DNA of 64,000 nucleotides from Hypanus sabinus. Taxonomy: Eukaryota. The first letter of the stretch is position 1. The number at the start of each line of letters is the position of its first letter. The notes beneath the pieces are model-generated. The model was not told the DNA's origin. It searched no databases and worked only from the letters and a program-made list of their open reading frames with translations. Positions 1-19,067 of this stretch are shown one piece after another. The stretch lies in contig NC_082710.1 of the NCBI RefSeq assembly GCF_030144855.1, forward strand, positions 150,164,001 to 150,228,000, written 5' to 3'. The translations under genes and the position numbers were made by a program.

Positions 1-3000
1 GAGCACATGAGCCACCGAGGCAGTGAGGACTACCCAATGGGATGAGCCTAGATGAGTAGCTGATGGTCAACATCCATCCTGTGGGCCGCTTACTGAGGAT
101 GTGACCGACCATGCTAAGGCAGCAGGACTGGAGAAGGTTGTTCTTGAACTGCTGACATGGCAGTCAGGGAGAGGGAGATTCCATACTTGTTTATTTTTAA
201 CCTATTTTCTCGTCGACCCTCCTCCCTTTGGCTTACTTAAAACACACCAATGGGTAGTTCACAGAGCCCAAATAATTTACTTGTCTGCAGGTTTGGGAAT
301 ATTGGAAGAAGCCGGAGAACTCGGGAAACCCAGATGGTCACAGGGAGAAGAGCACACTTTGCACTCGCATGGTATCTGAGATGGGCATCGGACCGGGATT
401 GCTGGAGCTGGGAGTGTGTGGTTTGCCCGCTTCACTGCCCTGCACGTTGCTCACTGCTGATCAGGATTAGCTGGCAGACTTTGCCAGTGCTGAACAACAG
501 CCTGAAGTCGAGGTTTGGGTTACTTGTAGGTAAAATCCAGGTGAGTGGAGATGGTGGACAGGCCAGGAGGTGAACAGAGACCCAGTCCTTTTAAGGGCAT
601 CACAGCTTGATGCTGCCCCTCCCCAGATTCATTCCTGAAGACTCCTGTCACCCGGCAACATGGAAAGCACTGGGCTTCTCCGTTCTCAAGATCTCACACT
701 CCGTACACCTTGATTCTAAACTGTACCCGTGTATGAGGCCAGTGCTGGTGATTGCCCACTTGCCAGGTGTTAATGGTTGGGAGGGGGAGACTTGGTTTGA
801 GTTGGCTGAGGATGGAAGAGAGAGTTTGTATTGGGGAAGGAGCTGCTGTCCATTAGCTTGTTCTTCCATGGATTTGGGAAGATTTTGTAGAAATGGCATT
901 AGTAGCATCTTGTGTGCCTTGAGCTGCAAGGTGGTCTTGGTCTCGATGCAGTGGAGCCTGCTGTCCATCTGAGCAGCTGGCCATTCTCTTGGTTGTGTCT
1001 GATACTGCCAAACTCAACCAGGGTCAAGGGTCATCTTCATCCACCATACACATGTACATGTATTAGGAATTTGTTGTTTTTGTTGCATGTCACACCATGA
1101 CCAACAATATTCCACAATTATAAAGAATTATATAAAAAAATAAAGTTGAAGAATGGATACTGAATAAAATGTGCATGAATATATAAATACCAGCATGTAT
1201 TTACAATATAAACAGGTGTCGGGTGATGAGTATTTGCCTGACAGAAGAAGAATATGTTGTCACAGATCCAAGAAAACGCTGCTTTTGAAGATGCAAGTGA
1301 TGAAAATTAACAGCAAACTACCCTTGGCTCTGCCTTTCAAGACAAATTCAGTTTATTTTCAGTGAATCATTGGATACAATCACTGGAGGAACGGTCTGAG
1401 CTGAACAGACATTGAACTCTGTCCTCGGAGGTCCGTGTCCTGGTACTGAAATCTGTCTAACTCTCTGGAACCAGCCGAGATTTCCCACAGAACCAGTGGG
1501 GGATGGGATAAGGAGGGCACAGTGAACAAAAGGCTGGAGGAGCAGGGAGGACCTGCTCACATATTGTAGGAGCAGTTGTAACCAGAGGTTGTGCAAACTG
1601 GTAATGGGGAGAACAATATAGCAGTTCTGCTGCTTGGTGAACAGTTAATAAGAATCGTAAACTATTATGATTCAACAGTCCTTCCACGCGAGGCCACACT
1701 TGTGCAAATCTGTTTGGGTCGTTGTTGTATATACTAGTCTTGATGTGGCCTCCTCTACATCAGTGAGATGTGTCATAAGTTTGGGGACTGCTTTGTTGAG
1801 CACATCTGCTCCATCTGATAAAAGCAGGATTTCCCAGTGGCCAAACATTTTAGTTCCCATCTCCATTCCCATCTCCATTCCCATATGCTATGTCAGTCCA
1901 TGGCATCCTCCTTCCCTCTTGCCTCTTCTTATCTGCCTTTCACCTCCCCAAGTGCCCCACCCCTTTCCTTTCTCCCCTGATCTACCCTCCTCTCCCATCA
2001 GATTCCTGCCCACCAGCTCTTTGTCTTTCCCACCAACTTGGCTTCACCTATCACCTAGCTATTCTCCTTCCCCCTTCCATTTTTTTAATTCTAGTATCTT
2101 TCCTTTCCCTTCCTTTCCAGTCTTGAAGAAGGATCTTGGCCCAAAATGTTAACTGTTTATTCGTTTCTATAGATGCTGCCTGACCTGCTAAGTACCTCCA
2201 GAACTTTGTGTGTTGCATAAACTATTCTATTATAAAAGAAATGTTTGCCTAGTGGATCAGTTATTTGGCTATTTGGAAAACTGGTAACTAAGAGAATCAG
2301 AGTCCAAGTTTTTAGTTTTTCTGGGATGGGATGGGAGGGGAAGAGTGTATTCCTTACACAGTGAGTCAGTGCGCTCTAGAAAGGTGCAGGGTTTTCAGTC
2401 ACGTCCTGAATGATGCTGGAAATCTGCATCAAATGGACAGACATCATGGGCAGATGGAGAGATGTCAGCCAGCTTCGAGGGAGGGAAACGTTACCATCAG
2501 GAAGGAAGTACAGAAGCCTGAAAGCAGATACTCAGTGATTCAGGAACAGTTTCTTCCCCTCTGCCATCTGATTTTCAAATGGACATTGAACCCACCTTAA
2601 CTCAACTATTTAATAGACCTAATGTAACTCAGTTTTTATTGTGCTCTATATTTATCAGATATCAGATATTTCATTATACTGCTGCCATAAAGTTAACAAA
2701 TTCCATGACACATGCCGATGATATTAAACCTGATTCTGATAATCTGGCATATTTTCCTGGATTAGTAGATGATTTGAAAAACCCCAACACAGTTTTCTGC
2801 CTGTTACACATTGGGACAGCAAACTTCCAGTGAACCTAGTATGTTTGAAGGAAGCAGGAAGCGTATAAACAGTCCAAACCATGTCTCTGGCTGTAAATGC
2901 ACCCGTATTGCCAACCTCAGTCCAGCCTCTGGACAGCCCAATTTACAGTCTGGACCCCAGCTCACTCTCTGAATGAATGACTAAGCTAGTTGCCCAACCA

Positions 3001-3618
3001 ACAAGGTTTCTGAACAATGTTGATGTGACTTGTCACCTCTTTTGACCAGCAGGTCAGGACTGGCTGTGCAAGTTACCCTGAGGTTGTCCAAGCAGTGATG
3101 TCTGAGGAGGGTTGTCAAGGTGTTCCTAGCTGACACTGACTACTCTGGTCCTTAAAAACACCCTCCTTTCTTGGTTATCCACCTGGTGGGACTGTGCTTG
3201 AGTTGGTGATGGAGAACCTGTACAGACTGTGATTATAAGCCACTCACTGTGTTTTCCCACACTCTCCATCCACTGTCCCTTTGGTTGTTGACTTTCCAGC
3301 CCTCAGGTGCACTGTGAGCTGTTTCTCTTCCCTTGGGCTTCAAGTCCAGGAGCACTTTCTGGTTCAGGGAGGAGAGTTGTGTTTATTAACTCCTGAATGT
3401 CCTTGTGCTTCTCATGAAACTGGGTCCAGGTTCTCACAGGAGAAAACAAGGGTCTCTCTCCCCCCCCCCCCACCCCGGTGTGATATGAAGGGAGGATGTG
3501 ATACAGTCACTCTGGAGAGTATTGCCTCCTGTCGCCGAGTCTCATACTGGATTGGTCACTGGAGTCAAAGTGGGCCCCCCCTCCCCCCACACCAAGGGGC
3601 AGCAGTCCTGAGCTGCGG

Positions 3619-4145
3619 TCAGATGTCTCTGTCACTACCGGTGTTGCCGTGAGCCTGTGCCGTGGGGGAATGGGTGCAGAAGATGGGGTGGAGCCTTTTG
3701 GTGGAGTCAACTGCCACCGTGCAGAGGTGCAGCTGCCTGCGAGCATCGAAGAAGGAGAGGTACCCTCGCAGGTGGTTCAGGTGGAGCCCCACCACTGCAG
3801 GCTCATCGTCCAGCACCAGGGTCCGCCCTGGAGAGCCCGTCACCCAGTACACCGTCTCGTTGAGCCGCGACAGGGTCCATACCCAGGTTGATCCCTCTCC
3901 CCAGGCCTCGTCATCGTCCCTCTGTCCCAGCAGGCCCAGGTGCCATTCCTGGCTCCTACCCACCTCCACCTCCCAGTAGGCCCGGTCTGAGGAAATGGCA
4001 TGGGAGGAGAGGGCACAGGGGCTGAGTTGCAGGCTGTAAAGTAGTCCAGGGTCCAGCGGTGGTAGGGAGCCCACTGCCATGCTGGTCAGGTGACCTGAGA
4101 GGCCAAGCTGTAGATCGGCTGAGTCCGTGTCCAGTCTGAGGGTAA
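3619..4145 (-). CDS. BTN-like terminal exon, B30.2 (PRY/SPRY) domain
   Basis: Acceptor ccctttcag|TT. Translates VTLRLDTDSADLQL...PCALSS..RAYWEVEVG..WHLG..VVGLHLNHLRGYLSFFDA..HL..LHPIFC, with stop at 3619. Confidence 0.92.
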
Positions 4146-7100
4146 CTGAAAGGGAAATGGCAAGGTAACACCATTATAACACAGCGACAGATATGGAATA
4201 GTCATTGGTCACACCTTTCCCCTAAACACTAATTAAGAGTATGCTCACCCTTGGCCCATCAACACTGACCTTTGCTCTCAACCAACAGACCTCAAGCCAT
4301 CCACTGCCCCCTCACTCTGTGGAGCTGAGCATCATCTAGTGAGTTCCCAGGGCTGATGCAAAGATGCTGCCATGGCTACTATATATGTGCCCTCTTTTGA
4401 GGGTATTCTCAGGAACCAAAATGGGAAGGCACTGGGCCAGAAAACATTACTCAGCCAGTGAATGGGGTTTCTGTCACATCACAACCCACCCATGCCTCAG
4501 CTCTAGGTGTCCAGTGGAGGCATGGAATTCATTGGGGATCTCTCTCTCGCCAACTGTTAACCAGCATTCTTGCCTCTGTTCCTTGAGTCCCACCGTGAGC
4601 TGGATTAAATTACCACTGCTCCATCCACTTCACTCACCTGAGAAACTGTGGATGAGTCTCCATTCTATGAAACAAGACGAAACCAGGGTCAGTTCTGGCT
4701 GATCAAAGAACCAAAGCTTTAAGTACTTGCTTATCATAATGTGAGATGTCTTACCGGTTTTGCCAACGTAGAACTGAGTGTGTGGAAGCAGTTCTGAAAA
4801 AAATCAATAAAACAGTCACAAATTTTCAGCTTTGAGCACATCACGTTTTGCTCTCATTTCCTATTGTAGCAGCCAGTAAGAGCGACTCAGTCCGGTCATA
4901 GCAGAATTAGTATTTGTCATGTCATATTAAATGTTGGGATGAGAATTATAGCTGCTGTTACAAACCTCTGCCCCAGAAGTTCCTGTTGGGTCAGTGTAGA
5001 GGAAGCTTCACCCTGCGTCTGACCTTTGGAGTGTGTGGTCAGGAGCTTCACTCTGATCAAGGGAGTGCGTGATGGGATGGTTTGGAGTCAGTTTCCCTCT
5101 GTGTCTGATCCCAGGAGGGTGTGCTGGGGCAGGGTAGAGGGGATTCACTGTGTTTCTTACCCCATCCGTGTATGATCAGACAATGTTGGGAGCTTCATTC
5201 CATTTCTGACTCTGGGAATGTGAGGTGTGACAGTGTGGAGGGAACATCTCTATGTCTGTCCTGTGATGTACCTGCCTGGCCTCAATAATTAAACTGGATG
5301 CCGGAGTGGGAAATGTATTCCAATTCTTGATCTCATTAAACTGGTCATTTACATTTAAGCACACTTTGTAAAATACATTTGCAAGTTCAAGTAACTCACC
5401 TCTGGTGCATGCAGTTGACACCTTCTTGATGTTATTCACCCTGTTGTGGATGATGCAAGTGACAGAGGGTGGGACCACCTGGGCTGTCCAGTGCTGGATC
5501 TCCAACCTGTACAGGCCTTCCTCTCCTGTTGTCTTGGTTACCTTCGACAGTGGCAACAGGTTCTTCCCCTCACTGTTCTTCCAGATGAGGGCGGGTTCGG
5601 GGAACCAGCCTTCTGTCCGGCATGTGTACAGGAAGGAGGTCTCGTTGAACTGCTCTGCGGATAAGGTGGGCTTCGTCCCAAGGGCTGAAACGGAATGGGA
5701 CCATTGGTCAGTTTGGAGGAAGTTGCATAGACGTTGCACCCCCCCCTGGACATCCGAAAGCAATGAGGCACTGTTAGAGAGTGGACACTCATCACATCAC
5801 AGTAAGGCAGTCTACACATGCACAAATCCCACAAATGAGGAGCTGATTACTTTTGTTTGAGGGGATTATTAATAAAACTGCTGAGGTATCTTCAATATGA
5901 ATCCCTCAAACAGGCCGTTTTGGATCTCAGGTCAATATATCATCCAAGTGACAGCACCTCCGATACACTGGCACTCCCTCAGGACAGTAAAGTTCGGATA
6001 AATCACCACACCCCAGTTCCTGTAATCTCCCTCCAGGACTCTGACTCCTGTGAGTTATTGAAGTTTTACTGTACTGCAGGAGTCCTGGAGCCTCTGTATG
6101 GTGAAAATTGACTCTCACTTTTTGTTTGAGGGATTATCTGTTTATTGTGGGATCTTATTGTGCACACAAAGACTACCCTCCTGGGATCTTACTGTGCACA
6201 CAAAGACTACCCTCCTGGGTCATTAGTGACCACACCTCAACAGTGCTTCATTGCTTTGGGATGCCCGGATTCTCCCTTTAGAACTAACCCACTTCAATGG
6301 GAGATTCATTTTGCTCCTTTGCGACATCTAACGCATGAATTAAAAGCTTTCCAGGAGTTTTAAGCGATACGGTATTCATTAATTCTGAGTATTTCCCACT
6401 CCAGCACAAAGTCTTGAGTGCGCAGGATTATCAGAGTTCTACTGGAATGAGGATTTCTGCTCAGGCTCGTATTGAAGGATTCAATCCTTGTTCTGAGGGG
6501 AGCTCTCCATTCCTTGTTGTCACTGGTCCCTGGAACATACAGCACCCTCCCCCCACCCCCACTCCCATTCATGGCCAGCACCATCTGGGGTCCCAGTTCA
6601 ATTGGACCTTTACCTCCACCAAGCAAGATGGTGCCACCTCCACACGGCTAGTGTCCATGGACACCCAAGATGGGGAACAGACTCATTACTCCAATGCCAG
6701 TCTGACAGGGTGCAAACCCTCTAGGTCTTTGCCCCAGTGAAGCCTGGATGGATGGACACCATTTAGGTTGACGTCTCTACGCATACTGTATGCAAGATGT
6801 TAGTGGGACCACACATGGAGTATTGTGTTCAGTTTTGGTCACACTGTTATAAGAAAGGCAACATCATTAAACTGGAAAAAAGTGCAGAGAAGATTTACAA
6901 GTGTGCTGCCTGAACTCAAGGGTATCTGTTATAGGGAGAGGTTGGGAAGGTTGGGAAATTTTTCCTTGGAGTGCAGGAGTCTGAAAGATGACCTTACAGT
7001 GATGTATATAATCATGAGGAATACACAGTCTTTTCCCAGAGAAGAGAACAGATTCAGAGAGGATCTGAGGGTCAACTTCTTCATGCGGAGGCTGGAATGT

Positions 7101-10100
7101 ATATGAAATTACTAGTGTTTGACGCAGGTACAAACACATTTAAGTACATTTGGCTAAGCACATCGATAGGGCAAATGGGACTAGCTTGGGGAGCACCATG
7201 GTTGGGATGGACAAGTTGGGTCAAAGGGTCTGGTCCCAGGCTGTTTGACCCTAACATTGAGAAATGGAGGAAAGCAAGAGTCTCCAGAGAGTAGCAGAGA
7301 CACCATTTCCATTGTGGGTACAGCTCTCCTCATTGCCTTTGTATTAGTGTGGAAGGGTCAGTGTATATGGAAGGCTGAATCACCTCTTCCAGGGGACACT
7401 CTCTACACCTTGCAGTGCGATCTGCAGTTGGGATTACTGGAGAAGGTGTAGTACTGTCCACTCCCCCAGGATGCTAGGCCTGAGCCTATGATGTGGTGGG
7501 ACCTGGCCCCGTCCCAAAAGTAACTGACCGCCATCATACCCACAACATTTAGATCCATCCGCACGTAGCTGGAGTGGGCCCCAGAGAAGACGGTGCACTG
7601 GTACATCCCTGCGTCGGAGGCCTGGACCCCCTCTAGCCTGATCGACACATTCCCATCCTCCAGCTGGTCACCAAGGAGGTGTGTCCCATTCCGGGAGGAC
7701 TGGCAAGGCCCCCCCTGATCATCGCAGGTCAGGACCACAGCTTGAGACCTCAGGTTCCTCCACTCAACCCCCAGCCCCCTGCCCTGGGGGCAGAACATCA
7801 CCGAACAGTTCAGTACAGCGCCTTCGCCCACCAGGGCCACGATGGGATGGTCCAGCCCCTTCACCCGAAACAACTCTAGGATGAAAGAAGAGAGCGTGAG
7901 AGGGGGCCATCCACCAAATTCAAATTCCTGAGGGCTCGGGAGGGCAAGCAATGTCTGCCAGTGCAGAACACGAACCCACCGAGAAAGGAGTCAATAGTCA
8001 GTCTATCACACAAACCGGCCTCCTCTTCGTGGACTCTGTCTCAGCACAGCAGCCAGCTCTTCCAGTCTTTGCCTCTTCTTCCCTCGTCCATCAGAAAGAA
8101 GACACAGAAGCCTGAAAGTACACTTTCACCAGACTCAGAGACAGCTTCTACACTATCGAGCAGTCCTAAGGTGGACTTGTGACCTCGCAGTCCACCATGC
8201 CATGGTCCTTGCACCTTACTGTCTGTCTGTACTGCACTCTCTCTATAACTGTGGCACTCTATTCTGCACGCTTTCTTTTGTTACTACCTTGATGTTTTTT
8301 TCTCTGGGATGACCTGTCTGGATGGTGTGTGAGCAGAAACTTGCCACATGGAGTCGTAGAACACTACATCACAAGAGGAGGCCCTGTCACCCATCTGGGC
8401 CATGCCAAACTAATCCCATTGCCCTGCCCCAGGACCGTAGCCCACCCAACCATGTACAAACCCCATTTCCAGAAGCGTTGGGACATTTTCCAAAAATACA
8501 ATAAAAACAAAAATCTGTGATATGTTAATTCACGTGAACCTTTATTTAACAGACAAAAGTACAAAGAAAAGATTTTCAATAGTTTTACTGACCAACTTAA
8601 TTGTATTTTGTAAATATAGACAAATTTAGAATTTGATGGCTGCAACACACTCAACAAAAATTGGGACAGAGGCATGTTTACCATTGTGTTACATCACCTT
8701 TCCTTTTAATAACACTTCTTAATAATTTTGGAACTGAGGATACTAATTATAGTAGATTTGCAATTGGAAATTTTGTCCATTTTTGCTTGGTATAAGACTT
8801 CAGCTGCTCAACAGTCCGTGGTCTCCGTTGTCTGATTCTCCTCTTCATGATGCGCCACACATTTTCAATAGGAGATAGATCTGGACTGTCAGCAGGCCAG
8901 TCAAGGACATGCACTCTGTGTCTACAAAGCTACGCTGTAGTAGCTCGTGCAGAATGTGGTCTGGCATTGTCCTGCTGAAATAAGCATGGGCGTCCCGGGA
9001 AGAGACGTCGCCCTGATGGCAACATATGTCTCTCTAAAATCCTAATATACACCTCAGAGTCAATGGTACCTTCACATACATGCAAGTCACCCATGCCGAG
9101 GGCACTGAAGCACTCCCATGCCATCACAGATGCTGGCTTTTGTACCTTTCGCTGATAACAATCAGGATGGTCGTTTTCATCTTTGGCACGGAGAACTCGA
9201 CGCCCGTTTTTTCCAAAAACTAGCTGAAATGTGGACTCATCTGACCACAGCACACAGTTCCACAGTCTTTCGGTCCATCTGAGAATGAGCTCGGGCCCAG
9301 AGAACTCGCCGGCATTTCTGCATAGAGTTGATGTATGGCTTCCTCCTTGCATAATACAGTTTCAAGTTGCATTTCTGGATGCAGCGACGGACTGTGTTAA
9401 GTGACAATGGTTTTCCGAAGTACTCCCGAGCCCAGGTGGCTATAAACATCACAGTAGCATGACGGTTTCTTAGGCAGTGCCGCCTGAGGGCTCGAAGATC
9501 ACGCACATTCAACAGTTGTTTCCGACCTTGCCCTTTACCGCACTGAGATGTCTCTGAATTCTCTGAATCTTTTCACAATATTATGTACGGTAGATGTTGA
9601 AAGACCTAAATTCTCTGCAATCTTGCATTGGGAAATGTTCCTTTTGAACTGACTAACAATTCTCTCATGAATTTTGGCACAAAGGGGTGAGCCACGACCC
9701 ATCCTTGCTTGCAAAGACTGAGCCTTTGATGGACACTACTTTTATACCCAGTCACGATACCTCACCTGCTACCAATTAGCCTGCTTAACGTGGAGTCTTC
9801 CAAACCAGTGTTACTTGAATATTCTGTGCACTTTTTAATCTTATTTTAACTCTGTCCCAACTTTTGTTGAGTGTGTTGCAGCCATCAAATTCTAAATTTG
9901 TGTATATTTACAAAATACAATTAAGTTGGTCAGTAAAACTATTGAAAATCTTTTCTTTGTACTTTTGTCAGTTAAATAAAGGTTCACGTGAATTAACATA
10001 TAAGAGATTTTTGTTTTTATTGCATTTCGGAAAATATCCCAACTTTTCTGGAAATAGGGATTATACTTAACAAAACATTATCTTAAGTGTTGAATGTGAA

Positions 10101-13100
10101 CCCACATCCACCACTTCGACTGGCAACTCGTTCCACTTCTCACCACCCTCTGAGCGAAGAATATCCTGTTATGTACCCCGTAACTGGGTCACTTACCAGC
10201 AAAGGTAGAGAGGTCTGTTGAAGTCTGATGGTACTATTTTCAACAGTATTTATTGGTAAAAATACACAAAAATAATATCAATGCAAACATACAGATAATA
10301 CACGTCGTCAATACTAAATCTAAAAGTGCGGGTATAATAATAATCAATAAGAAATAAGCTCTATCGTTGTCTAGGGGATAACGTATTGTCCGATGGAAAT
10401 ATAAAAATCATTTAGTTCTTTCAGGCTGCAGCTTTTTGGTTGGAGGGAGACAGATTTTAGAAACTTGCCAGCTTTTCCTTTTTATGATGCCGATCCTTCG
10501 AAATGTCGTTGGTGGTGATCTCTTCTTTAGCTAAGCCGACTTCCGTGGTAAGGCCTCAATCCCGGGCAACGGGAAAGGACACACGTGGGCCTTCCACCGG
10601 CTGACGCTATTAAACGCTGTCACGGGATTTCTAGCGTTTCTCCTGGTGCGTCTGAAGGGGTTGTTCCCCAGACCCTCTTTTATCTTTACTCAGATGTCAA
10701 TCAGGTTGGGATGATGCCATCCCTCAACCAGCCCCCTCTGATCATCCCCTGAGGGGCTTCAATGAATAGTACAGTACTCAGTACACAATTCCGTCTCCAA
10801 GAGACAATGGCCGGTATCCGTGGCTTTGTCTCGCTGGGGGCAGGACACACATTACAAACCCTTGAGGATTCTCTCTCATTTCCTGGGTCCCCAGACCTGA
10901 ATTAATAGCGATCTTGCGATTCTCAAAAAGGAGGGGGCTACTTTGTACCCTTCGGCCCCTCAGAGTTGTGGCACAGTCGTAACAATCCCTTTCAGGGTCA
11001 CCTCAGATATTTCACCTTTCACCCTTACCATATGACCCCTAGTTCTAGTCTCGCCCAGTCTCAGTGGAAACCCTCATAGCAAGTGACAATAATAAACAAA
11101 TTACAAAGTCCGTCTCTCTTTGTGATGTTTGAGCAGTGAACAGTTCTGGACCAAATCCCTGCTGCTGTTTATTGGTTTTGGAATTAGTTTATTAGTTTAT
11201 TGTTGTCACTTGCACTGAAGTACAGAGATAAGCTTGTCCTGCATAGCTTCATACAGATCAGTTCATTACACGGCACATTGAGGTAGAACAAGGGAAGGCA
11301 ATAACAACACAGAATAAACGTAACACGAGTGAATCTGCAGATGCTGGAAATAAATAAAAACACAAAATGCTGGCAGAACTCAGCAGGCCAGACAGCATCT
11401 ATGGGAGGAGGAGACCTGACGAAGGGTTTCGGCCCGAAACGTCGTCACTACCTCCTCCCATAGATGCTGTCTGGCCTGCTGAGTTCTGACAGCTTTTTGT
11501 GTTTTTACAGAATAAATGTAATGGCTACAGTGAAAGTACAGAGTAGGGAAACAGTACGGCCTTCTACATCTACCCCATCATCACCCTCAGCAAAACTACT
11601 GGTTGTATCCAGATATGAAACTCCCCCACTGATGTCCCACAGAGGGGCACATACTGTGAGGACAGTGGGGGAGTACCCAACACTTCTCTCTCCTGAGTAG
11701 GACCAATCACTACACCACTAATCTCCCCGATATGTTACAGGGTCACTGATCACTGTAACCCCGAGCTAGTTCTGGGAATGGTAGCTCCAGCCATTTGTCC
11801 ATAACACTATCAGGGCAGAATTAGGCTCCGCACCTCTGCCTTTACCTGATGCCGCTGTCTGATCCGTGTGGTGGAAGGTGAAGCCTTCGTGCTGGATGTT
11901 GGGGGTGAGCCATGACTCTGTGGAGCTGGGTATGCAGCAGTCCCTGATGTCCCTCCTGGTACTGCAACCTTTCTCGGAGATCTTCACTCTTAATTTTCAG
12001 AGACCGTACATTAGCCAGGAGGATGGTAAGAAGGGAATTGGGGTCTTAAGGCCCTGTGTTTCAGTTTTACCTGCAGTCCACTCCAGCAAGCTTGCTTTCT
12101 CAAATTCCCTGCATACCAGAGTAGGTCCCGTAATCTTTCTGCTACTACGTTAGCACGCTGGGTGTTCTGCAGTTGCGGGGACTCGAGAGGTCTCCACATT
12201 TTGGATCCACATCACATGTTCTGGGATTGCCCGACACTGTCTGAGATACATTACTCAAAGCCACAGAGAGAAGTGATGTTAACTGTAATGAACCATGATT
12301 TCACTGGTCATAACCTCAAGCTCAGAAGTTGGAGAGTGTGCAGACGAACTTGTGCAGACAGTGGAGGCTAAGTCAGCACAACTGCCTGTCATGATGAGTT
12401 TCTGGGCAACACTAACCCTCACTGTCTCCATCCCCACCTCCCATCCCATAATTCTAATCCAGCACATCCACCCGGGGGTTAGGACATAGAACATTACCAG
12501 AAAAGGCCCTTCAGCCCAAAATGTCTGTGCTGACCATTATGCCAACCCAGTTAATCCCACCTGCTTGCAAGTGATCCATATCCCTGACTTCCTGCTTGTT
12601 CTTAAGCCCGTCTAAATATCTCTTAAACATTATTGTCGTTCTGCTTCCACCTCCTCTCCTGGCAGTGCGTTCCACGTACCTACTGCCCTTTGTGTCAACA
12701 AATTGCCTCATTAATCTCTTTTAAACTTTCCCCCTTTTGCCTTAAAGTTCTGCCCTTTAGAATTTGCCCCTTTAACACTGGGACAAAGATTCTGGCTGTC
12801 TAGCCAATCCATGTCTCATTATAGTTTAAACGTATTTCAGGTCACCCCTCCGCGGCAGAAACAATTCTAATTTGTCCGACCTCTCCTCACAGCTCAGGCA
12901 GCATCCTGGTGGAGCTGTTCTGCACATCCATGCTGTAATGGAGTGACCACAACAGCATACAACACCCCGGATGTGGCCTGGAGCTGTAACATGACTTCCC
13001 GGCCGTGACATTGAAGACCCCGAATGATGAACGTTCCTGGGCCAAGGTCCCACCCCGTTGAGCGGGAGCTGCCCAAGTGCAGTGAGCTTCAGTGAACGGG

Positions 13101-16100
13101 AGGATCACAGAGAGTCAGGGGTCGAAGGGCCGGAGGAAGTTAGAGTGTGAAGGAGGGACAGGAATGGAAGGAGTTACAAACCAGAATGGGGGATCTCAAA
13201 TCCACCCGGTTGTACCTTTTGCCGGAGTTGTTTATTCCGTTATCTTGCACCAAACCTTACCTAGGTTTGCCGTATCCCAGTAGGACGTGAGCATTGCTCC
13301 TGAAAGTATCACCACCTGTAGTAATATCTCCACTATCAGGTTTCTCCCCCACACAGAGACCGAGCTGTCAGAACTTCCTGTTGAGACACGGAAATCGATA
13401 AACTGGTTTATTATTGTCATTTCCTCAGAGCTACAGTGAAAAACACTGTTTTGCTCGCCATCCGTACAGATCACTACATTACTACAGTGCATGGAGTAAC
13501 GTGTACATTGGAAAACAATCTCTGGCTGCAGAGTAAGGTGCTACAGAGAAGGTGCAGTGCAGGCAGGGAGGAAACCTGGGGGAAAGCCACTCAGTCACAG
13601 GTAGAACGTGTAAACTCCACACAGGCAGCACCGGAGCTCGGAAGACAAACCAGATGGGAAGTGTTGGAATCTGGACCGATGCTAGAAGAACTCCCCTTGT
13701 CAGGTAGCATCTGTGGAGGCTAAATGTTGAAAGTTGATTGTTTGAGTCAAGACCGGGCATCAGGACTGAGAGGGGACATGATAGCCGGAGGAGTTGTGAG
13801 GGAGGAATAGAAGTTGGTGAGTGATAGCTGGACTTACTGCCCACTGGTATGAACAATGAACTTCCCAGTTGTCACATAACCCACAGCTCCCCACCCCCAC
13901 CATGCTCTCCCAACAGCCATTTGTCCACCTAGTTCTGTTCTCCCTTTCTTCAGTCTTCCCATCCTTTCATTCACCTGGTTCCACCTCTCGCCCAGCAGCC
14001 TCTGCTTCCATCTGCCCACACTCCACATGGATAGTCCCAAGCCCAGTTACAAAGGGAGGAAGGTTGGGTGCTGGGCGAGCAACCCCTATAAAAAAACCCA
14101 GTGCTACAGAGAGGGCAACAGAAGCTCCAAAGACCACATCCCTGGGAGAAGAAGCACGAAGGTGGCTACACACGGGGAGAAGCTGAACGACTGGCTCAGG
14201 ACAGAGGACTCTGGCGAGCTGCTGCCAGTGGCTTATGCCCCGACAGAGAGGAAGGGCTTACGAAGACCCTCTCCTCCCCACCTGGATCCACCTGTCACCC
14301 ACCAACCTCTGTCAAATGCTCCTCTATGCTCTATATACTTCTATACCTGATAAATACTGGCAACCTTCCCTATCCCCTCTCAGTCCCGACACAGGGTCTT
14401 GATCTCAAACATCGACCTACTCTATGCTTCCTGACTTGCTGAGTTCTTCCAGCATTGTGGTCTCTTGCAGCCGTGGCCAGGGTCAAACCAGATCTAGGGA
14501 GTGCTGCTTCTAGCTGTGCCACTGGGAGGTAAACCCACAGGGTATTTGAACTGGAAATTCAATCCAGCAAAGCACAATTCTACCCTGACCGGTGATGCCT
14601 AATGAGCACCAGTGTTGCCATAGCCTTCCTGGTTCTAAGTCTAGTACCCAGGAAAGGAAGCCCGCAGTCCCATCCTAGGATCTCACTTGAACACGGGGGC
14701 AGTCCTTGACATGTCTTTGGCTCCCTATGCCATCTGGGAAAATAGGATGGATAACACAATATACTCCCTAACCAGATCCCAGAACTACTTCTAAAGAGTT
14801 CTTTCCTGATCTTTGCCAGATTACTGGCCTCTCCTGTGCTGTGTCTATCTGAGACTCGATAAGAAGTGAGTAATCCACAGAAAAGTGGCGCATTAGACGG
14901 ACGCTAATTCAGTTGAAACGACCAGTGTTTTTATCAAAAACACTACAGATACTTGTTTTCCAATCTGAGGGTCTGAAGGAAGCTCTGCAGAAACTGGTCC
15001 GAGGGAGCCACCCAGTGGTAAGAGCCTTCAATTACATCAGCAGCATTTCACAGTAACCATCCCTGTGGAGAAGCAGCCAGTTTGTGCGCAGAGGAAGGAC
15101 GCGCAGACATAAATGAAGAACAATCGTGTGGTGGGCTTTGGGGGTTGGCTGGGACTGAAACTTGCTGGGTGGAGACCGAGTGTCTGAGGGAAGGGTTTGG
15201 AATTGGAACTGGTTTAGTATTGTGACATGGTCTGAGATTCAGTGAAAAACTTATCTTACATACTGTCCACACAGATCAATTTGTTACACAGTGCATCGAG
15301 GTAGCATAAGAAAGAAAAAACATTGCAGAAGAAAGTGTAAAATCAAGAGAAAGTGTTGTGCAGGTAAACAATAAGTTGCAAGATGGTAATAGGCAGATTG
15401 TGAGGTCGAGTCCTTTTAAGGTCCGCTGTGCTCATTCTATCGGTTAGACAATAGACAGTAGGTGCAGGAGTAGGCCATTCAGCCCTTCTAGCCAGCACCG
15501 CCATTCACTGTGATCATGGCTGATCATACACAATCAGTACCCCGTTCCTGCCCTCTCCCCAAATCCCTTGACCCCGCTATCTATAAGAACTCTATCTAAC
15601 TCCCTCTTGAATGCATCCAGAGATTTGGCCTCCACTGCCTTCTGGGGCAGAGCATTCCACATATCCACCACTCTCTGGGTGAAAAAGTTTTTCCGCATCT
15701 CTGTTCTAAATGACCTACCCCTTATTCTTAAACTGTGGCCTCTAGTTCTGGACTCACCCCTCAGCTTCCTGCCTCCAGCATGTCCAATCCCTTAATAATC
15801 TTATATGTTTCAATCAGATCCCCTCTCATCCTTCTAAATTCCAGTTAGGCTGATGTGTTACCTGTCCTAGAGCATAGCATACCGTCTCCACTCTACCCCA
15901 ACCTCCAGCTTGGTTCATGAGCTCAGGACTTGACCCCCAGTCTCTACCCCTGGGGTGTGACAATCTACCAAGCCACTGTTAACCCTTGGCCTCAGTAGGA
16001 ACTGTCCGTGGGGAGTAGAAGGATGGAATTAGTGGGCAGGCCTGCACTTGGCTAATGCCCAGTGTCTGAGCTGTCAGACATCAGCACCGGCAGAGGCTGC

Positions 16101-18286
16101 TGACTCCAGAGAAAGCCTGCCACAGCGTCGGCAGCTCCTGAGGTCCCGGGTGGGGAGGGTAAGATAATTACTTCACAAACAGATGTGGGTGTTTAGTTGC
16201 AACATTAGCATCTCACTCTCTGTGACCACAGCTATGACTCAGGCATGAAGTCTCTGTGAACATCGGAACAGAGAGCCTAAATGTCTGTCAACACACGTCT
16301 TTCAAACAATCAATGGGCCATAAAGAAGACGTAGCACACAATCAGTCTAATTCTGCTGGTGATTAGATGAGTTAATTTGTTCGAAATATTGTAGAATTAT
16401 ACAGCACAGAATGATGCAACTTGCCCCTGAGAACTCCAATTGCTCCCTACTAAAGCTAACCAACCTCACCCCGCGGTCTTATGACTTCTCTCAATGTCCT
16501 TTTTTGACACTGGCCTGCTGAGTTCCTCCAGCATTTTGTGTGTGTTGTTAACCTCCTCTGCTCCACGGAATACAGACCTAACCTTTCTAGTTTCTCTTCA
16601 AACGGGATTGGAAAAGATGTGCACAGACAGTGTGGCCGGAAAGGACTTTTCCTGTGTTGTTTCTATCTGAGACTCTATAAGAGGCGTATCATTTACAGAA
16701 AATTGGCCCATTAGCGGACGTTAATTCCATTGAAACGAGCAGTGTTTTGTCAAAAAAATGTAAGGTACTCTTTCTGATGTGATGGACTGAAGGAAGCTCT
16801 GGTCCAAGGGAGCCACCCAGTGGCAAGAGCGTTCAATTACATCCAGACCATTGCCGGCCTTCTGTGGGGGAGCATCTTCCAACGAGGATACATTTCGCGT
16901 TCCCTGGCCTTCCTCGTCATCGGTGAAATTCTCATAATGTTCCTTCCCACCTAAGTCTTCTATCACTTCTTTGATACTTACTTTTCCGAAAATGTATCCA
17001 GGTCGTTACGCTGACCGCGATTACAGTCACTGTCAAGGCTTCCCAAACTCGAGGCGACCAGCTCTGTGCACCGTGGGGAATTAACCGCCCTGGGGAATTA
17101 AAACACCAACACAGTCTGGGTCGGAGTTCCTTGAGGTTAGCAGAAGGAGGGCTGGCTCTTTTCAAACATATGAGATCCTAAGGGGGAGATGCTGGGTATT
17201 TCCACCAGTGGTAGAGTCACGAACGAGGGGAAATGGATACAGGATAAGGGTCCGGTCATTTAAAACCGAGGTGTAGAGAACGAGGGTGGGTAATCCCTGG
17301 AATTTGCTGCCCTTGAGGGCGATGGAGTTCAGATCTTGAGGTATTTTTAAGTTGGAGATGGATTCATATTTGAAAAATGGAGGAATCGAGGGTGATGGGG
17401 AACAGGAGTTGAGTGCAGCCCTGATCATGTGGAATGGTGGGGCTGGAGCGGGTTGAGAGGCCGAGTGGATTCACCCTGTTCCCAGTTTCTTGTGTTCTGC
17501 TTTTATTCTTGCTGGCATCTTGGCACAAGGAGTGATTGGTAAATCGGTAAAATTGTTCATTATTGTTACGTGGACCGAATACAGTGAACACTTCGGTTTT
17601 GCGATGCTGAGCCCTGGTCCTCAGCTCAGCCTTCATTTAACCGTCCTTCTCCCCAAGCACAGCTTGTGGGGTCTCATCCCTTTGGAGACCGACACCGTGG
17701 GGCGTCGTGTACCGCGACCACTGGCTGTTCACCCCGCTGCTGCAGCGAGCCCCGCAGCCACTCCGAGATATCCTCAGGTGCGGCGGGGAAACAGGTGATC
17801 CGGAGCCCGGTACGTCGGAACTGGAAGCCTCTCTGTGCTACACAGAGTGGATGGCGCATCACCCTGAAAGGCGGCCTCAGGTTAAACCCAGAACTCATCC
17901 CCATGACAAGCTTTTCAGCGTATCCCGGCACGTGTGACTATAATAAACCGAATCCAACTCCAGAACATATACTGTAATACAAATAAGTCCAAACACTAAA
18001 ATTCCAATTCCGGGGATCTGATCAGCTAGGACTGGGTTTCATTCACCCTGCGGACCGTGGCGTGTGGAGCCGGTAACACAGCAGCTCCGGAACGACGGGG
18101 AGCTAACGGTGGTCGGTTCCCTCAGCATGACGGTCCCGGCACTGAGGAACTGCGAAGGGTCCGACCGGTGACTACACCGCTGCTTCGGGCGAGGTTGGCG
18201 GACTGACAGCCGGGTTTAGGGAACGCGGGCGAGGGATCGAACGGGAACTCACCGGTCGGCTGATTCGGCAGACCCACCGCGTTCAT
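3619..18286 (-). CDS. Butyrophilin-like gene (leader-IgV-IgC-B30.2, no post-Ig transmembrane exon), 7 coding exons, ~454 aa
   Basis: Exons 18286-18253, 13377-13261, 7875-7540, 5684-5400, 4793-4755, 4664-4638, 4145-3619. All introns are GT-AG and phase 1, and the joined frame is open (1365 nt). Ig and PRY/SPRY motifs are typical of the BTN family. The two 5' exons are inferred from splice and phase fit. Confidence 0.85.
4638..4664 (-). CDS. BTN-like 27-nt pre-PRY exon (EWRLIHSFS)
   Basis: tttcatag|AATGG...TCAG|gtgagt; phase 1-1; EW motif typical of BTN linker exons. Confidence 0.8.
4755..4793 (-). CDS. BTN-like 39-nt linker exon (ELLPHTQFYVGKT)
   Basis: tttttttcag|AACTG...ACCG|gtaaga; phase 1-1. 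Confidence 0.75.
5400..5684 (-). CDS. BTN-like IgC domain exon
   Basis: 285 nt, phase 1-1. ALGTKP...YTCRTEGWFPEPALIWKNSEG...VTCIIHN matches the BTN IgC signature (C-x3-GWFPEP-x3-W). Confidence 0.92.
6780..7250 (+). mobile_element. Decayed CR1 3' fragment
   Basis: ccacacatggagtattgtgttcagttttggtc; KVQRRFT..LP. Confidence 0.75.
7540..7875 (-). CDS. BTN-like IgV domain exon
   Basis: 336 nt, phase 1-1. FRVKG..PIVALVGEGAVLNC...VEW...GNVSIRLEGVQASDAGMYQC matches the BTN/MOG-type IgV. Confidence 0.93.
8457..10063 (-). mobile_element. Full-length degenerate Tc1/mariner DNA transposon (IR/DR type)
   Basis: ~215-bp terminal inverted repeats (8457-8671 / ~9849-10063) with internal ttgggaca direct repeats, and TA target duplication (8455-56, 10064-65). 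The transposase is frameshifted, with WSDES and FQQDNARPH motifs (ORFs 9237-9512, 8930-9352). Confidence 0.93.
10167..10984. mobile_element. Solo LTR (818 bp)
   Basis: TGTTA...TAACA termini; 4-bp TSD ATCC (10163-66 / 10985-88); interrupts a CR1 fragment. Confidence 0.85.
11324..11506 (+). mobile_element. Short Penelope-type fold-back element with hammerhead-like core
   Basis: ~57-bp inverted arms (11355-11507) enclosing CTGACGA..GAAACGTC; flanked by a 15-bp direct repeat ACAGAATAAA(C/T)GTAA. Confidence 0.65.
13261..13377 (-). CDS. BTN-like signal-peptide/anchor exon
   Basis: tctcaacag|GA...CTAG|gtaagg; 117 nt, phase 1-1; hydrophobic core LIVEILLQVVILSGAML. Confidence 0.7.
15445..15845 (-). 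mobile_element. CR1 3' fragment
   Basis: Typical CR1 3' UTR with tagacaatagac tail. Confidence 0.75.
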
Positions 18287-18906: not shown

Positions 18907-19067
18907 NNNNNNNNNNNNNNNNNNNNNNNNNNNNNNNNNNNNNNNNNNNNNNNNNNNNNNNNNNNNNNNNNNNNNNNNNNNNNNNNNNNNNNNNNNNNNN
19001 NNNNNNNNNNNNNNNNNNNNNNNNNNNNNNNNNNNNNNNNNNNNNNNNNNNNNNNNNNNNNNNNNNN
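18907..19067. other. Assembly gap (161 N)
   Basis: Run of N. Confidence 1.

Follow-up and report, generated by a model that had tools for sequence, protein, structure and literature searches.

The window analysed here, a stretch of 64,000 nucleotides from the genome of Hypanus sabinus (contig NC_082710.1, positions 150,164,001 to 150,228,000), carries on its minus strand an eight-exon butyrophilin-like gene, the product of which combines two immunoglobulin (Ig) domains, IgV and IgC, with a C-terminal B30.2 (PRY-SPRY) domain and has no transmembrane (TM) segment between IgC and B30.2. The gene is intact and expressed, the spliced contigs coming from relatives of the stingray, and it is recognisable as a butyrophilin relative from its domains, exon organisation and linker motifs. 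The IgV domain is preceded by two hydrophobic helices separated by a basic loop, and the sequence of this region suggests that it probably forms a membrane hairpin, with the N-terminus outside, the loop in the cytosol and the rest of the chain outside. Because no TM segment follows helix 2, B30.2 would share the compartment of the Ig domains, and its location on their side of the membrane is considered likely.

The region between the IgC and B30.2 exons

The borders that the first-pass annotation of this DNA had given for the IgC, 39-nt, 27-nt and B30.2 exons proved exact; together with the IgV exon these lie on the minus strand, with GT-AG splice sites and phase 1 introns. The same annotation had noticed no hydrophobic exon in the introns between IgC and B30.2, and hydropathy scans, reading of the frames and spliced contigs of three relatives all agree with it. 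In a Kyte-Doolittle scan of the minus strand from 7400 to 3600 (19-residue window, mean ≥1.4) no TM candidate was detected between the two exons, the sole scoring window there (4201-4145, 1.47) abutting the B30.2 exon but lying in a different frame. When all open stretches of the three introns were read in three frames, no hydrophobic open frame was found.

Contigs of four public runs were aligned to positions 3000-8000 of the window; the spliced evidence thus obtained derives from relatives, not from Hypanus sabinus itself. Three RNA-like runs (X19, X1 and X17), which represent three different organisms with ~90-95% identity to the window, cover the exons and show no depth in the introns, while run X2, a DNA run, extends over the introns too. 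The contigs of the former three join 7540 to 5684, 5400 to 4793 and 4755 to 4145, and at the last of these joints 23-27 letters remain unplaced that match the 27-nt exon 7, a result that bears out the order of junctions proposed earlier (5400, 4793, 4664, 4145). Single contigs span the entire path from IgC through both short exons to B30.2 (record 7 of X17 and the 2020-nt record 1 of X1), the latter continuing into the 3' untranslated region (3'UTR). In the relatives, then, IgC and B30.2 belong to one transcript, and no TM exon separates them.

It could still be argued that a TM exon was missed or is absent from the assembly, or that B30.2 belongs to a transcript of its own, given that the window includes an assembly gap (18907-19067) and repeat-rich introns. 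The first-pass annotation had itself named such transcripts as grounds for giving up its proposal. These explanations are contradicted by the relatives' contigs, which run from IgC to B30.2 without interruption, while the gap lies upstream of the start codon and a TM exon is likewise absent from every orthologue model; taken together they seem extremely improbable. As a specific candidate, a hidden TM exon was ruled out by the hydropathy scans, the three-frame reading of the introns and the transcript contigs.

Orthologues were identified in 11 elasmobranch species in all, including both rays and sharks, and the comparison suggested in the first-pass annotation gave a uniform answer, the internal TM segment being absent from all full-length models. 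With one protein per species, the set includes Hypanus, Mobula, Pristis (isoform X1, P0159), Cetorhinus, Pristiophorus, Heterodontus, Mustelus, Scyliorhinus torazame, S. canicula and Heptranchias. The family searches, with P0001, the family alignment and residues 1-88 of the basking-shark protein as queries, were word-limited; within this limit, which does not exclude chimaeras and other groups, nothing beyond the family reached E≤1e-40, and residues 1-88 matched nothing outside it. The gap between IgC and B30.2 amounts to 23-24 hydrophilic residues in every full-length member (41 in the S. canicula model P0008), with a mean 19-residue Kyte-Doolittle value (KD19) near 0. In most other proteins of the match set that combine Ig and B30.2 domains, including the shark proteins P0029 and P0090, it is 70-105 residues long and holds the classical TM segment of KD 2.3-3.3. 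Such TM-bearing shark butyrophilins are found in Stegostoma and in Mustelus, which has the TM-less gene too.

Several models deviate from the common pattern. P0008, flagged as low quality, shows four near-identical IgV copies before IgC and 17 extra residues before B30.2; the copies are either a tandem expansion of the IgV exon in the catshark or an artefact of assembly or annotation. In P0152 (Pristis isoform X2) the model begins within helix 2 and the hydrophobic N-terminus is therefore missing, and P0158 (Heptranchias, 318 residues) ends after exon 7, without B30.2; both may be alternative isoforms or incomplete predictions. The sterlet P0099 and Callorhinchus P0047 were considered as further cases of the TM-less architecture and were not counted, since both predictions are fragments, P0099 corresponding to the IgC end of P0028, a sterlet protein that does have the TM segment. 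P0021, a model of 1133 residues with an 8-residue gap and multiple B30.2 and IgV domains, was set aside.

The two N-terminal helices and the predicted topology

The first-pass annotation had regarded LIVEILLQVVILSGAML as the only hydrophobic segment of the protein. This was mistaken, since exon 2 (17089-16982) encodes a second one, ALTVTVIAVSVTTWIHF. A second hydrophobic segment is also seen at the N-terminus of P0001, a 490-residue protein with 85% identity that was found with the B30.2 exon in a full-database HMMER search, and tblastn of P0001 and P0008 placed it at 17090-16965 of the window. Exon 2 (108 nt, 36 residues, phase 1-1) encodes a short stretch, the hydrophobic segment and then RK, the next Arg being split by the intron. 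The earlier model of 454 residues was accordingly incomplete and equals the 490-residue protein minus the residues of exon 2. The eight-exon coding sequence (1473 nt), all seven introns of which are GT-AG and phase 1, yields a 490-residue product identical to P0151, annotated in NCBI RefSeq as "butyrophilin subfamily 1 member A1-like" of Hypanus sabinus (Table 1). Pfam matched V-set and C2-set_3 on the proteins P0151 and P0153 as well; neither RING nor B-box, the domains sought as marks of a TRIM protein, was matched on these two.

Table 1. Coding exons and 3' end of the TM-less butyrophilin-like gene (positions in the window).
Feature	Position	Strand	Description
Exon 1	18253..18286	-	Start codon and 11 codons (MNAVGLPNQPT), the first start after an in-frame stop; donor GT, phase 1
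Exon 2	16982..17089	-	Short stalk-like stretch, helix 1 (~residues 26-45), start of basic loop (RKR); AG/GT, phase 1
Exon 3	13261..13377	-	Remainder of basic loop and hydrophobic helix 2 (~residues 61-82)
Exon 4	7540..7875	-	IgV; four invariant cysteines and invariant N-x-S sequon; Pfam V-set (E=7e-7, in 7403-7951); both borders in spliced contigs
Exon 5	5400..5684	-	Butyrophilin-type IgC; Pfam C2-set_3 (E=3e-16, in 5400-5682); joints 7540/5684 and 5400/4793 in contigs
Exon 6	4755..4793	-	39 nt, encodes ELLPHTQFYVGKT; hydrophilic linker, opens ELLP/DFLP
Exon 7	4638..4664	-	27 nt, EWRLIHSFS; EW..I micro-exon
Exon 8	3619..4145	-	B30.2 (PRY-SPRY) and stop codon; Pfam SPRY (E=4e-10, in 3622-4143)
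3' untranslated region	3018..3618, at least to 3018	-	Reached by contigs of X19 (records 12, 13) and X1 that lack the introns

The introns of the gene contain a number of repeats. A decayed Tc1/mariner-type transposase in several open reading frames (ORFs) lies inside intron 3 (8364-10070, minus-strand ORFs at 8747-9714), with its repeated ends near 8364-8684 and 9864-10070. Very high-copy interspersed repeats occupy parts of introns 5 (~4837-5337) and 4 (~6674-7007), where the contigs add up to a depth of thousands to tens of thousands in the DNA run X2 and to high values in the RNA-like runs too. The assembly gap (161 N) falls within the presumed promoter region, ~620 nt before the start codon, and leaves the coding model unaffected.

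All members with a full N-terminus possess both helices, with 14-18 residues of basic loop between them. Helix 1 is conserved above the Ig domains, with 82% identity within sharks and 61% between rays and sharks, the respective values being 73% and 56% for helix 2, 63% and 53% for IgV and 67% and 56% for IgC, and exon 2 is the best-conserved part of the N-terminus. As judged from these alignments, the conservation of the putative hairpin far exceeds that of a disposable signal peptide. Exon 3 directly precedes the IgV exon, the place of the leader exon in genes of the immunoglobulin superfamily; in this gene three exons with two hydrophobic helices precede IgV, and helix 2, in leader position, ends in small-x-small triplets that are conserved as SGA in rays and as AGA and VFA in sharks. 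AlphaFold2 placed helices at residues 24-49 and 56-84 with low confidence. The full-length model, built on a 9-sequence alignment, had a mean predicted local distance difference test (pLDDT) score of 50.8, with B30.2 below 35, and inter-domain geometry was not drawn from it. A search of the Atlas for the hairpin as a known module came back blank, and a Pfam match to DUF2568, a bacterial membrane protein (E=7e-6), was taken as a match of hydrophobic composition.

According to the positive-inside rule, basic loops stay in the cytosol. Across the species the net charge is +3 to +4 in the loop, 0 to +2 in the N-terminal flank and -1 to +2 in the 15 residues following helix 2, and the rule therefore predicts a cytosolic loop, an N-terminus outside and translocation of the chain after helix 2. 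Helix 1 would insert as a reverse signal-anchor with the N-terminus outside, the loop would remain in the cytosol, and helix 2, in the place of the old leader exon, would thread the remaining chain into the lumen of the endoplasmic reticulum, so that IgV, IgC and B30.2 would all end up extracytosolic. Two outcomes are about equally likely. The protein may stay tethered by the hairpin, with IgV nearest the membrane and B30.2 farthest from it, an order opposite to that of classical butyrophilins; alternatively, signal peptidase may cleave at the small-x-small site near the end of helix 2 and release a soluble IgV-IgC-B30.2. Either way B30.2 would act as an extracellular binding head instead of a cytosolic sensor. 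The first-pass annotation had proposed a secreted or type II-anchored protein with B30.2 on the side of the Ig domains, perhaps a decoy ligand or a soluble molecule for pattern recognition. The shared side is very probable in view of the genome, the transcripts of three relatives and the full-length orthologue models, none of which has a TM segment between the domains, whereas a type II anchor or a single signal does not agree with a two-helix N-terminus, and the protein could be secreted only through cleavage of helix 2.

The predicted translocation of the Ig domains is consistent with the conservation of their disulfide cysteines, of an extra pair of IgV cysteines and of an N-x-S sequon at residues 162-164, all of which are invariant across the family. 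The opposite topology, with the N-terminus in the cytosol, the loop in the lumen and the whole of IgV-IgC-B30.2 cytosolic, would keep B30.2 in its usual compartment and move the Ig domains. It finds some support in the intracellular location of B30.2 in the matched butyrophilin and TRIM structures and in a B30.2 without a conserved glycosylation site. However, the retention of these cysteines and of the sequon across the shark-ray divergence speaks against it, and the positive-inside rule opposes it strongly, with 4-6 Lys/Arg in the loop versus 1-2 in the N-terminal flank, which makes such an orientation quite improbable.

Another explanation dispenses with the hairpin: a single N-terminal segment might serve as a type II anchor or a signal peptide of the ordinary kind, and IgV-IgC-B30.2 might be plainly secreted, for instance through skipping of exon 2. 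The symmetric phase of this exon means that the frame would survive its loss, and helix 2 would then come to lie ~25 residues from the start, preceded by an Arg and with a small-x-small site after its core. Nevertheless, all ten species for which the N-terminus is complete have exon 2 in their gene models, produced by two pipelines, and its outstanding conservation was noted above, so the single-segment explanation seems unlikely. A transcript lacking exon 2 was not seen either, though the contigs were aligned to 3000-8000 only and do not cover the 5' exons.

Several points weigh against the extracytosolic hairpin. The topology is derived from charge and hydropathy only, and the inclusion of exons 1-3 in the transcript is based on gene models and protein conservation. 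The helices are moderately hydrophobic (KD19 of 1.3-2.0 for helix 1 and 1.8-2.4 for helix 2), with Glu or Gln in each. In the family alignment B30.2 shows neither a conserved sequon nor an obviously new disulfide that would mark an extracellular site, and the stingray domain lacks many of the consensus residues. The 490-residue protein does have a sequon at residue 411, within its B30.2.

Divergence of the stingray B30.2 domain

The B30.2 domain of the sharks is canonical (E ~1e-40 to BTN3A1, pyrin and TRIM21) and, with 75% identity, the most conserved globular domain among them. In the stingrays it has changed considerably. An outgroup set of 66 B30.2 domains has 50 columns with ≥80% conservation; of these, 43-45 are retained in sharks, 37 in Pristis, 29 in Hypanus and 27 in Mobula. 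Likewise, both PRY and SPRY pass the Pfam thresholds in the shark orthologue, while PRY falls below the threshold in Hypanus and Mobula. Compared with the close relative represented by run X19, the B30.2 exon of Hypanus has at least 19 differences in 527 nt (~4%), the 3'UTR 17 in 436 nt and the IgC exon 5 in 285 nt, i.e. the B30.2 exon changes at approximately the rate of the 3'UTR and about twice that of IgC. The coding differences listed against this relative comprise 14 nonsynonymous and 5 synonymous ones, ~6 further differences lying outside this rough count.

Such figures could be an indication of decay in the stingrays, of the whole gene or at any rate of the B30.2 exon, with the missing TM segment as the mark of a dying copy, as the loss of consensus columns and of the PRY match, the excess of nonsynonymous changes (at least 14 of the 19 listed) and a divergence similar to that of the 3'UTR would suggest. 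Yet Hypanus, Mobula and Pristis all have an intact reading frame, the TM-less layout is shared with the sharks, in which B30.2 is so well conserved, and three relatives transcribe the gene and splice it correctly. Furthermore, the ray domain is still predicted as a confident B30.2 fold: the AlphaFold2 model of the Hypanus domain (75-sequence alignment) reached a pLDDT of 83.7 and a predicted template-modelling score of 0.79, and Foldseek aligned it to the B30.2 domains of TRIM21, pyrin and BTN3A with template-modelling scores of ~0.75. Decay as the cause of the layout is thus regarded as very improbable. The stingray B30.2 appears to evolve fast while keeping its predicted fold, which fits a binding surface under diversifying selection at least as well as it fits decay.

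Origin of the layout and comparison with known proteins

Traces of the classical arrangement can be recognised in the short exons. In classical fish butyrophilin-like genes the exon after IgC opens with D-F-F-P, followed by a few residues, a Trp and the TM segment, and the last micro-exon before B30.2 reads (S/T)-E-W-x-x-I. Both ends survive in the TM-less family, where exon 6 opens with DFLP (sharks) or ELLP (Hypanus) and exon 7 carries EW..I; what lies between these motifs in the classical genes, namely the hydrophobic core and the cytoplasmic micro-exons, is gone. Exon 2 of the sharks, on the other hand, reads L-F-P-x-G-V-S-G-W, a helix and W-I-A-Y-R-K-R, and the stalk/TM exon of paddlefish and sterlet reads F-F-P-G-V-S-G-W ... 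Q-W-I-R, the Smith-Waterman scores of the pair being 5-6.7 standard deviations above those of 500 shuffles.

On the basis of these likenesses, relocation or duplication of the TM exon is put forward as a hypothesis: a classical butyrophilin would have lost the hydrophobic core of its TM exon together with the cytoplasmic micro-exons, and a stalk/TM-like exon would have been gained upstream of the leader exon. A relocated stop-transfer TM segment (out-to-in) and the old leader (in-to-out), both in their native orientations, would together produce the very hairpin that the charges predict. In its full form the proposal is an exon-level permutation, in which the stalk/TM exon was copied or moved before the leader, the original decayed to the 39-nt hydrophilic exon, both segments kept their ancestral orientation, and B30.2 was thereby flipped outside and has been kept there since the shark-ray split as an extracellular, membrane-distal binding head that diversifies rapidly in stingrays. 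This scenario is tentative and should be seen as possible rather than probable. The significant likeness of exon 2 is limited to two related acipenseriform proteins, its similarity to nine other classical proteins is weak or not significant (z at most ~2.6), and exon 2 of Hypanus itself is not significantly similar to the exon of paddlefish or sterlet.

With the classical butyrophilins (BTN1A1, BTN2A1, BTN3A1 and their fish and shark relatives) the gene shares IgV and a C2-set_3 IgC, a C-terminal B30.2, one domain per exon, phase 1 introns, short exons before B30.2 and the DFFP-like and EW..I motifs. It differs from them in having neither a TM segment nor coiled-coil micro-exons between IgC and B30.2 (23-24 versus 70-105 residues), in the three exons and two helices that replace a simple leader, and in a B30.2 that is predicted to lie outside rather than in the cytosol. 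The Ig domains of classical butyrophilins face the T cell, and in the matched solved structures (BTN3A1/BTN2A1, by their entry titles) B30.2 is an intracellular sensor, e.g. in phosphoantigen binding. The IgV-IgC ectodomain is also found in BTNL2-type and other B7 relatives without B30.2, and the Heptranchias model P0158 also stops before this domain; those proteins, however, are type I with a C-terminal TM segment, whereas the present protein retains B30.2 and carries its anchor at the N-terminus.

The long signal peptide of arenaviruses, the stable signal peptide, contains two hydrophobic segments and offers an analogy only: in both cases an N-terminus of ~60-80 residues with two hydrophobic segments precedes a translocated ectodomain and is conserved far beyond an ordinary signal peptide, but there is no sequence relationship. 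Vespryn and ohanin are secreted B30.2-type proteins. PRY-SPRY proteins of this kind occur in snake venom proteomes (PMC4566206). They share with the present protein a B30.2-type domain able to work outside the cell, but belong to another lineage and gene family and have no Ig domains or hydrophobic hairpin; a signal peptide followed by PRY-SPRY alone is not what is seen here, where two Ig domains and the two-helix N-terminus precede B30.2.

A TRIM-type PRY/SPRY gene with a related B30.2 is located nearby (~29349-30706 of the window). It too shows an unusual membrane attachment, but has a RING/TRIM architecture with a multi-pass membrane tail after B30.2, which is expected to be cytosolic. Its PRY/SPRY exon (29360-29875, plus strand) is 49% identical to the B30.2 of P0008, compared with 41% for the ray B30.2 of the gene described above. 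The S. torazame orthologue also adjoins a RING-PRY-SPRY gene (757 residues), and the neighbourhood is thus conserved.

A literature search of partial coverage, which does not prove novelty, returned no description of a butyrophilin with this layout. The gene model is already public through automatic annotation, and its topological consequence appears to have gone unremarked; the automatic label "BTN1A1-like" implies a classical topology, which is corrected here. If the predicted topology is true, the inside-out signalling layout of butyrophilins would not be obligatory, and the elasmobranch protein would offer a natural extracellular B30.2, the ligand of which is open to search. The symmetric phase 1 exons would then allow the membrane anchor to shift within the gene, and, should the permutation be true as well, the protein would provide the first known case of a butyrophilin in which B30.2 serves as a binding head outside the cell and distal to the membrane.

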